Below, one piece after another: positions 456-1,626 of a stretch of DNA of 64,000 bases. The stretch is from Diadema antillarum. Lineage: Eukaryota. The stretch lies in the NCBI RefSeq assembly GCF_040938485.1, contig NW_027271810.1:124001-188000 (forward strand), read 5' to 3'. The position numbers and the translations under genes are program-made. The first letter of the stretch is position 1. Every line of letters begins with the position of its first letter. Under the pieces are notes generated by a model, which was given only the letters and a program-made list of their open reading frames with translations, ran no database searches and was not told where the DNA came from.

Positions 456-1626
456 TGTTTTGGAGAAACGCGATGGAGATGTCCACGTTGAGAACGTCTC
501 CAGTCGTCTGCTCGGCAAACGTAAGAGGTGTTACCTCCGCCCATCTCCTAAATGCCGTGTAGAAGATGTTTGACGAGTCCGAAATATATTGCGATTTGTA
601 GGCATCGAGCACACGCCACGTGATGGGAAGGTTATTGGCGGACAAACGCATGCCGACACCCGAAGGCTCCCTCACGTTTCCACCCGGGCTGGCGTAGGTA
701 TTCCGACGCTCACGGTGAAGAGGTCTTTCCGCCATTGCGCGCCGAACGGTTTCCCGTAGGTCTCGTCTTCGGCGAGACTTCACTTTGTCCGACTGAGGCC
801 CCTGTTCTGCAGGCTCCGTCTCCGTAGGTGCTGCGACAGTAGTTAAATCACCATCCTCCTCAACGAGAGTCGAGAGAGTATCTGTGACGGTGTATAATAG
901 GATGGTGGTGTCTTCCACCTCTTCAACGGGAGAAGGGGATGTTGTCAACTCCTCGTTGTCTACTTCTTGCTCAGTTTGCGAGGGATCTTCGTCCATCAGT
1001 GAGCTTATCTCCTGGATCGAGAATTGATCCCACATGCTGTCTGCTGAGTTGCCATCCTTCGCCGTAGGGTCGGGCAGCGCGGGTGGCACAGGGGTGCGAG
1101 ATTCCTTCCCCTCACCCTTTGACGTCTCGACTCCTAGGACCTTAGAAACTACTGATTTTCCGAGCTCTTTTGAATTATCAGCAGGGACTGTCGACGTTGA
1201 TATCTCAGTGGCGATATCCGTTACCATCTCAGGAGTGACGGCATCTGAGGACCTTCCTTTACCCTGCAACGATTGTTCACCAGCTCCTGTTGATTGTCCT
1301 TTTGATTCTGTTGACTGGTCTTTCCCATCAGGGTTGCTCTTGTTCGCCGTGACCTGGGCAGGCGAGTAGTCTGGAACCCCGCACCTCGGCTTTGACATTA
1401 TCGCTTTGGTGGCCTCATCTATCACGCCGGTGACGGGCAGGTGGTACCGTCTCTGAAAGACCTCGATTCCTGACTGCAGGTTCTCTACCGCTGTAAGGGG
1501 AACTTCCGGTTCCGTCGCTTGCGTGGCTGAGGGTGCCAGAGGCCGAGCGCGGGAACCCGTCTTCTTGAGCTCATTTTTGTCTGTTGTAGATATCCTCTCA
1601 ATGTACCCGTATTCAGATAGGAATTT
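456..1626 (-). CDS. MMP21-like: MMP coding exon 2 (1171 nt): prodomain KFLSEYGYI...FQRRYHLPVTGVIDEATKAIMSK, cysteine switch PRCGVPD, long acidic S/T-rich insert, RRRR and RERR sites, N-terminal catalytic domain (ITWRVL...AFRRWAEVTPLTFAE...VDISIAFLQN)
   Basis: Acceptor: polypyrimidine tract then ccatag|AAA at 1627/1626, in frame with ORF 433-1425. PRCGVPD at 1389-1369. Donor AACA|GTGAGT at 456/455 (phase 1). By recall, the catalytic start matches MMP21 (LSWRLL..AFRMWSEVTPLDF.E..VDIKLGF) better than the LTY.I.NYT start of most MMPs. The zinc motif HExxHxxGxxH is not in the window. Confidence 0.92.

Follow-up and report, generated by a model that had tools for sequence, protein, structure and literature searches.

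MMP21 is among the few proteases linked to determination of the left–right axis in vertebrates, in which it has been reported to be a flow-transported signal (bioRxiv 10.1101/2024.10.13.618030). The hallmarks described for this matrix metalloproteinase (MMP) are a furin site, an insertion of 20–44 amino acids (aa; the length applies to vertebrates) between the PRCGXPD and RXKR motifs, and a unique catalytic cysteine (PMC2656525). Echinoderm genes that group with MMP21 have been counted as probable orthologues in a review of echinoderm MMPs (PMC8467561). Here we analyzed a stretch of 64,000 nucleotides (nt) of Diadema antillarum DNA (assembly GCF_040938485.1, contig NW_027271810.1, positions 124,001 to 188,000; the whole stretch is called the window below), which carries the first two exons of such a gene, and focused on the 198 codons that separate the cysteine switch of the encoded protein from its furin-type motifs. 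With a probability of about 0.8, this segment (775–1368) is a translated MMP21 insert that has been enlarged in a lineage-specific manner to ~200 residues, is strongly acidic, and forms an unfolded propeptide spacer with two short motifs.

Orthology and exon plan of the Diadema gene

The protein sequence encoded by exon 2 aligned without gaps to the Diadema setosum protein annotated as "matrix metalloproteinase-21-like" (P0009, 791 aa) with 95% identity (95.5% at the nucleotide level), and the exon 1 product was 100% identical to the same protein. The D. setosum locus (L002; GCA_964275005.2) aligned along the whole window. In a maximum-likelihood tree of 30 proteins (558 columns), six echinoderm proteins were placed inside a 22-member MMP21 clade with a support of 95/98, and MMP2, MMP12, MMP15, MMP16-like, and plant MMPs fell outside it; the outgroups of this tree were few (six animal and two plant MMPs, with echinoderm paralogues left out). 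A protein search with the sea cucumber orthologue retrieved, at E values of 1e-256 to 1e-26, only proteins named MMP21 or MMP21-like, which came from echinoderms, molluscs, amphioxus, and vertebrates; other MMPs followed from 1e-12. With P0002 and P0009 as queries, MMP21 proteins were matched at 1e-70 to 1e-50 and other MMPs at 1e-12 or weaker, and a search with the Diadema pro/insert region gave fish MMP21 as the first match outside echinoderms. A further word-based protein search added neither sea urchin orthologues nor any sequence derived from transcripts.

The boundaries of exon 2 were identical in Diadema, the sea cucumber Holothuria, the frog Ascaphus, and the snail Biomphalaria, in which this exon has 391, 391, 220, and 285 codons, respectively. 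In all four, the exon 1/2 junction lies just upstream of an x-L-x-x-YG-Y/W motif and the exon 2/3 junction 4–5 residues past D-I-x-I/L-x-F. Genes were also sought for a fish protein (P0068) and an amphioxus protein (P0038), and neither had one recorded. Since urchin, sea cucumber, frog, and snail share these boundaries, the expansion of the insert took place inside a conserved exon. By these sequence comparisons, the gene is an MMP21 orthologue and a matrixin of the M10A/Peptidase_M10 type. An earlier note on this DNA had called it an MMP21-like protease and had proposed comparing its catalytic domain with M10A and its intron positions with those of vertebrate MMP21. The clade placement, the identity to the D. 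setosum protein, and the common exon 2 boundaries all uphold that assignment; the Pfam PF00413 match, together with the position inside the MMP21 clade, speaks for the M10A affinity, and the exon 2 boundaries match those of frog.

Table 1. Features of the MMP21 gene in the window.
Feature	Position	Strand	Description
Exon 1	8661–8858	minus	66 codons, ATG at 8858; followed by donor gtaagc from 8660; tblastn of P0009 residues 1–66, 100% identity
Exon 2	456–1626	minus	1171 nt; spans the prodomain through the first ~82 catalytic-domain residues, with the switch, the insert, and both furin-type motifs in between
PG_binding_1-like prodomain	1390–1626	minus	Pfam PF01471, E = 2e-5, 25.1 bits against a cutoff of 23
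Cysteine switch PRCGVPD	1369–1389	minus	C, G, and D invariant across family alignments
Acidic Ser/Thr/Pro-rich insert	775–1368	minus	198 codons; residues 20–217 of ORF 433–1425
Conserved island 1, SMWDQFSIQEISS	1000–1038	minus	Core W-x-Q-F/Y-S-I/V-x-E-I/V-S; alignment of six echinozoan sequences
Conserved island 2, TTILLYTVTDTLSTLVEE	856–909	minus	Pattern T-T-x-L-x-Y-T-V-T...L-V; alignment and hydropathy
First furin-type motif, RRRR followed by D	763–774	minus	RPKR in Lytechinus-type urchins
16-residue spacer between the furin-type motifs	715–762	minus	Short low-confidence AlphaFold2 helix (P0009 residues 356–365)
Second furin-type motif, RERR followed by N	703–714	minus	Same alignment position as RKKR/RPKR in the MMP21s of vertebrates, amphioxus, and molluscs
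N-terminal part of the Peptidase_M10 catalytic domain, to DISIAFLQN	456–702	minus	Pfam PF00413, E = 1.7e-5, 25.2 bits against a cutoff of 24

The frame of exon 2 contained no stop from position 1626 down to a stop codon at 433–435 (~397 codons), and the exon was bounded by an acceptor (ccatag/AAA, with ag at 1627–1628) and a phase 1 donor (AACA/GTGAGT, with GT at 454–455). The hydrophobic N terminus encoded by exon 1 is a probable signal peptide. The pre-pro region up to RERR amounted to 374 aa, 66 from exon 1 and 308 from exon 2, which bears out the length of ~374 aa given in the earlier note. Its further statements that 198 stop-free codons rich in E, D, S, T, and P lie between PRCGVPD and RRRR, and that all of them belong to one exon, also held: coordinates, residue count, and composition agreed, and 775–1368 falls inside exon 2, for which both acceptor and donor were located. 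The Pfam domains PG_binding_1 and Peptidase_M10 flank the insert. The PF00413 match covers exon 2 residues 334–388, and the window holds only the first third of the catalytic domain, with the HExxH motif and the hemopexin domain lying past its left end. Exon 3 was sought within positions 1–455 and rejected there: candidate acceptors ran into stops, and positions 1–424 aligned to intron 2 of D. setosum, ending ~30 nt short of exon 3, which places exon 3 ~30 nt outside the window. The D. setosum orthologue has a complete Peptidase_M10 domain, including the zinc motif HEIGHFLGLSH and the Met-turn SIMYP, and HEIGH is also encoded by exon 3 on a Lytechinus-like genomic contig (L001). In a Foldseek search, the AlphaFold2 model of the D. 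setosum protein matched full-length MMP-1, MMP-13, and MMP-12.

Some minor features of the gene were also recorded. In exon 1, the probable signal peptide is followed immediately by ~20 residues (8700–8760, minus strand) that are almost exclusively Ser apart from a few Thr and Pro; this run was 100% conserved in D. setosum. The prodomain has a loop of its own, a low-confidence segment of ~40 residues between helices 1 and 2 (P0009 residues 79–110, with a predicted local distance difference test score (pLDDT) below 50); the AlphaFold2 model has helices on both sides of this loop, and the alignment showed additional sequence at the same place in other MMP21s. Intron 1 (1627–8660) was ~7.0 kb long, compared with 7.4 kb in D. 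setosum, and was mostly 80–88% identical to its counterpart, but only 71% identical at 7875–8358.

The insert and furin-type motifs across the MMP21 family

In vertebrate MMP21/XMMP, a signal peptide, a PG-binding-like prodomain, PRCGVPD, an insert, an R-x-K/R-R motif, and the catalytic domain follow one another in the same order as in the urchin, and the two share the exact position of the insert, the exon 2 boundaries, and the clade. The hemopexin domain likewise directly follows the catalytic domain without a hinge, as judged from the D. setosum orthologue, where it starts with YG-x-C...FDWVR in the part corresponding to sequence outside the window. Conversely, the urchin proteins differ from vertebrate MMP21 in having an insert of 198–218 aa with an isoelectric point (pI) of 4.1–4.4, two furin-type motifs instead of one, and, in the D. 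setosum orthologue, no unique catalytic cysteine. In MMP11, MMP28, and the MT-MMPs, only a few residues lie between the switch and the convertase site. Like MMP21, these enzymes have an R-x-K/R-R convertase site between the cysteine switch and the catalytic domain (PMC2656525); they lie outside the MMP21 clade and were matched only at ~1e-12.

When insert length was measured from the cysteine switch to the last R-x-K/R-R motif, tetrapods had 25–46 aa (net charge −1 to +3), amphioxus 66–67 aa (basic, pI 9.3), molluscs 81–115 aa (basic, pI ~10), the crinoid 84 aa (net +7), the chimaera Callorhinchus 86 aa (net −3), and the brittle star 131 aa (net −4, pI 5.5), as opposed to 197 aa (net −30) in Holothuria and 194–218 aa (net −18 to −21) in sea urchins. 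The MMP21-like proteins of molluscs, amphioxus, the crinoid, and the brittle star are orthologues with an insert of intermediate length (66–131 aa) at the same place. Their inserts are basic (pI 9–10) or, in the brittle star, mildly acidic, and all fall short of Echinozoa in both length and net charge (−18 to −30). The Diadema insert is therefore the extreme of a family-wide variable region, and its length and acidity are specific to Echinozoa among the sampled taxa. It illustrates how a family-specific linker has grown ~5- to 8-fold and reversed its charge within one exon while under selection throughout.

The earlier note was right that the insert is far longer than that of vertebrate MMP21 (198–218 aa vs 20–44 aa; PMC2656525), but it also named annotated orthologues with this insert as grounds for dropping its candidate for undescribed biology, and such orthologues exist: the insert is already present in database entries from D. 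setosum, Lytechinus pictus, Holothuria leucospilota, and Apostichopus japonicus. The D. setosum MMP-21-like protein, the product of this gene in a sister species, has an identical insert architecture with both furin-type motifs and both islands, and differs from the Diadema antillarum protein at 19 residues in exon 2, 10 of which are in the insert. Such a divergence points to another diadematid species or a deeply diverged lineage. The literature searched mentions echinoderm MMP21 orthologues and does not describe the long insert. The sequences are thus public in the annotation of these four echinozoan species, and the insert is not a new kind of system.

Of the two furin-type motifs, RERR, located 20 residues after RRRR, was identified by alignment as the positional homologue of the MMP21 RXKR activation site. 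Its distance to AFRxW is 49 residues, compared with 45–57 residues in other MMP21s except amphioxus (32 residues). Depending on the motif chosen, the insert measures 198 aa (switch to RRRR) or 218 aa (switch to RERR). Both motifs are kept in Lytechinus-type urchins, as RPKR and RERR/RQRR, and tandem furin-type motifs were also found in the brittle star, the crinoid, and Mytilus. Sea cucumbers have kept the acidic insert but possess one or zero R-x-K/R-R motifs. The furin site had previously been assigned to RRRR; a furin-type motif does exist there, but it is neither the sole motif nor the homologous one, which is RERR.

Predicted disorder, selection, and competing explanations of the insert

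The 198 residues of the insert include 39 Asp and Glu vs 14 Lys and Arg, giving a net charge of −25 and a pI of 4.05, as well as 50 Ser and Thr (25%), 15 Pro (7.6%), four aromatic residues, and no Cys. The charge is unevenly distributed, with a net of −2 in the N-terminal half and −23 in the C-terminal half. The acidic half adjoins a basic stretch of 24 residues (residues 285–308; net +7, pI 12) that comprises both furin-type motifs and the spacer. A Pfam scan of the insert gave no family above threshold. Four S-x-E/D motifs were present, and Asp-rich repeats were absent. The Ser/Thr/Pro content makes O-glycosylation of the insert plausible.

The D. setosum protein P0009 was used for structure prediction with AlphaFold2, based on an alignment of 36 family members. 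In the resulting model, residues 155–354, which contain the whole insert, had a pLDDT below 50 and no secondary structure, and the catalytic and hemopexin domains had a pLDDT of ~90. The disorder proposed in the earlier note is thus also what the model predicts. Over a long distance, the insert is the fastest-diverging part of exon 2: identity between Diadema and Lytechinus was 31% with 30 gap columns in the insert, compared with 48% in the prodomain and 62% at the start of the catalytic domain. Two islands persist within it. The core of island 1 is common to sea urchins, and island 2, the sole hydrophobic patch of the insert, has a pattern common to urchins and a related pattern in sea cucumbers. 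Fast divergence with two persisting islands is a pattern typical of a disordered linker with short motifs.

According to the mechanism that we propose, the cysteine switch would block the catalytic zinc in the zymogen, and a furin-type convertase would cut at RERR/N, the homologous site, and probably also at RRRR/D. The mature enzyme would then start at NTYAS..., and the acidic linker would be discarded together with the PG-binding prodomain without becoming part of the mature protease. Because the linker would leave with the prodomain, the insert could matter only before activation, by affecting how the zymogen folds, is trafficked, or stays latent or how well the convertase reaches the neighboring basic stretch, or afterwards as part of the pro-fragment that is set free. 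The earlier suggestion that the insert could be released on activation fits its location upstream of the furin-type sites, from where it would be expected to leave with the propeptide. We also considered an acidic propiece that neutralizes a basic mature enzyme and rejected it, because the mature enzymes of Echinozoa have a mildly acidic pI of 5.4–6.2.

A spacer of this kind presupposes that the insert is translated, and part of 775–1368 might instead be a cryptic or alternatively spliced intron, in which case the mature insert would be much shorter and the gene models would over-predict it. The orthologous proteins are indeed computational gene models, and both public sequencing runs on the region look like DNA: these two small runs gave short contigs of depth 2, some of them on introns (33–273, 4498–4748, and 5140–5341), and were taken for low-coverage DNA because introns were covered as well. 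The run contigs at 436–609, 733–940, 977–1166, and 1265–1518 are contiguous with the genome and show only that; one run contig has a loose end of 10 letters at 436, too short to interpret. Comparison with D. setosum argued against an intron. At a synonymous divergence (dS) of 0.13 between the D. setosum sequence and the window, the insert showed 10 non-synonymous and 16 synonymous changes, corresponding to a ratio of non-synonymous to synonymous rates (dN/dS) of 0.18 (Fisher P = 2.8e-5), close to the values for the prodomain (0.20) and the start of the catalytic domain (0.15). The dN/dS, which the earlier note had proposed to measure across echinoderms, thus indicates purifying selection on the insert for this Diadema pair. 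Changes at codon positions 1, 2, and 3 numbered 4, 5, and 17, and the coding-type pattern was found in all three thirds of the insert, with 7 of 9, 5 of 8, and 5 of 9 changes at third positions. No indel was observed in its 594 nt, compared with 7.7 expected at the rate of the adjacent introns (P = 5e-4). The flanking introns were 87–90% identical to those of D. setosum and contained 13–16 indel events per kb, as opposed to 95.5% identity and no indels in exon 2.

The reading frame was, in addition, open in two Diadema genomes, the Lytechinus-like contig, and Holothuria (exon 2 gap-free, 391 aa). The Lytechinus-like contig has an acceptor and a donor as in Diadema exon 2, and the gene models of L. 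pictus and Apostichopus include the insert. Exon 2 was colinear with annotated proteins, gap-free with that of D. setosum and gapped with those of Lytechinus and sea cucumbers, so the open frame is not a product of chance. The low dN/dS, the lack of indels, the third-position bias, and the open frames in relatives make a constitutive cryptic intron unlikely, and they favor reading the insert as translated sequence. A minor isoform without part of the insert may exist, but we regard removal of a substantial part of it by splicing as very improbable.

If the insert is translated, it might be a functional module and not a spacer: the islands could work as short linear motifs, or the convertase could be gated by the tract of acidic residues, thereby tuning the activation or travel of proMMP21, or else the released pro-fragment could itself be active. 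A dN/dS on par with that of the flanking folded domains, the lack of indels between two Diadema species, and islands that are conserved among urchins and recognizable in sea cucumbers agree with such a module, as do the juxtaposition of the net −23 half with the net +7 stretch holding both furin motifs, the retention of tandem furin-type motifs in urchins, the brittle star, and the crinoid, and the reported transport of vertebrate MMP21 by flow (bioRxiv 10.1101/2024.10.13.618030). However, the insert diverges faster than the prodomain and the catalytic part between Diadema and Lytechinus, AlphaFold2 assigns the islands neither structure nor docking, and the sea cucumbers, despite their acidic insert, have at most one R-x-K/R-R motif; we therefore consider this explanation unlikely. 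Less probable still is a calcium-binding or biomineral-matrix module that tethers the zymogen to the calcite skeleton, as the earlier note had envisaged. The acidic composition in a calcifying animal, and the presence of several other MMPs in the spicule matrix proteome of S. purpuratus (PMC8467561), would suit this idea, but the distribution among taxa does not: the long acidic form is common to urchins and sea cucumbers, the crinoid lacks it (84 aa, net +7), and the brittle star has it only weakly (131 aa, net −4). The S-x-E/D motifs are few and accompanied by no Asp-rich repeats, the MMPs that the review names from the spicule matrix all go by names other than MMP21 (PMC8467561), and the insert, lying ahead of the furin sites, would probably be gone no later than secretion. 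The biomineral idea is thus unsupported.

Several points weigh against the translated, unfolded spacer that we prefer. Inclusion of the whole insert in the mRNA is deduced from evolutionary signatures and from the gene models of other species, and cleavage at either motif is read from the consensus. The catalytic motif is encoded past the end of the window, and its presence is known only through the orthologue of D. setosum. The alignment behind the low pLDDT had little depth, with 36 rows and few of these over the insert; the score is consistent with disorder rather than proof of it. Moreover, the insert has a dN/dS no higher than that of folded domains and contains two islands, which suggests a function more sequence-specific than that of a mere spacer.

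The sea urchin has a clear MMP21 orthologue with the same exon plan, which supports the use of urchin embryos for asking whether laterality in deuterostomes ancestrally involved an MMP21 module. The two short motifs and the double convertase site are directly testable features. A bolder proposal, which we regard as quite doubtful, is that in urchins and sea cucumbers a short neutral or basic linker was converted to a 200-residue acidic regulatory module, whose motifs, along with the double convertase site beside it, would set the place and time of protease release. If this were true, then, given that vertebrate MMP21 serves as a laterality signal carried by flow, the module could mark a different deployment of the same left–right determinant in echinoderm embryos.

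Catalytic domains of echinoderm orthologues and repeats in the window

The column of the unique MMP21 cysteine was occupied by Cys in vertebrate, amphioxus, and mollusc sequences (HLGC/HQNC context), and no Cys was found there in the sea urchin, sea cucumber, crinoid, or brittle star orthologues; this position belongs to exon 3, outside the window, and was judged on the D. setosum orthologue for a feature defined on vertebrates only. D. setosum exon 3 (L002:19523–19834; compare L001:1709–1988) also encodes no His at the columns of RH..., AHA, and IHFDDDE in vertebrate, mollusc, and amphioxus MMP21. These three columns presumably represent the ligand positions of the structural zinc. The crinoid orthologue retains two of the three histidines. 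Despite the missing histidines, the HExxHxxGxxH motif and the Met-turn are intact in D. setosum, and the domain is predicted with a pLDDT of ~90.

Elsewhere in the window, a minisatellite with a unit of 128 bp (6.7 copies, 69% match) was found at 15598–16462, where it yields two spurious overlapping open reading frames of 162–191 aa. Two adjacent arrays of a 42-bp unit, at 42903–43057 and 43072–43224, contain 3.6–3.7 copies each, and their units are mutually reverse complementary. These paired arrays form a palindromic tandem-repeat structure that is possibly part of a mobile element.

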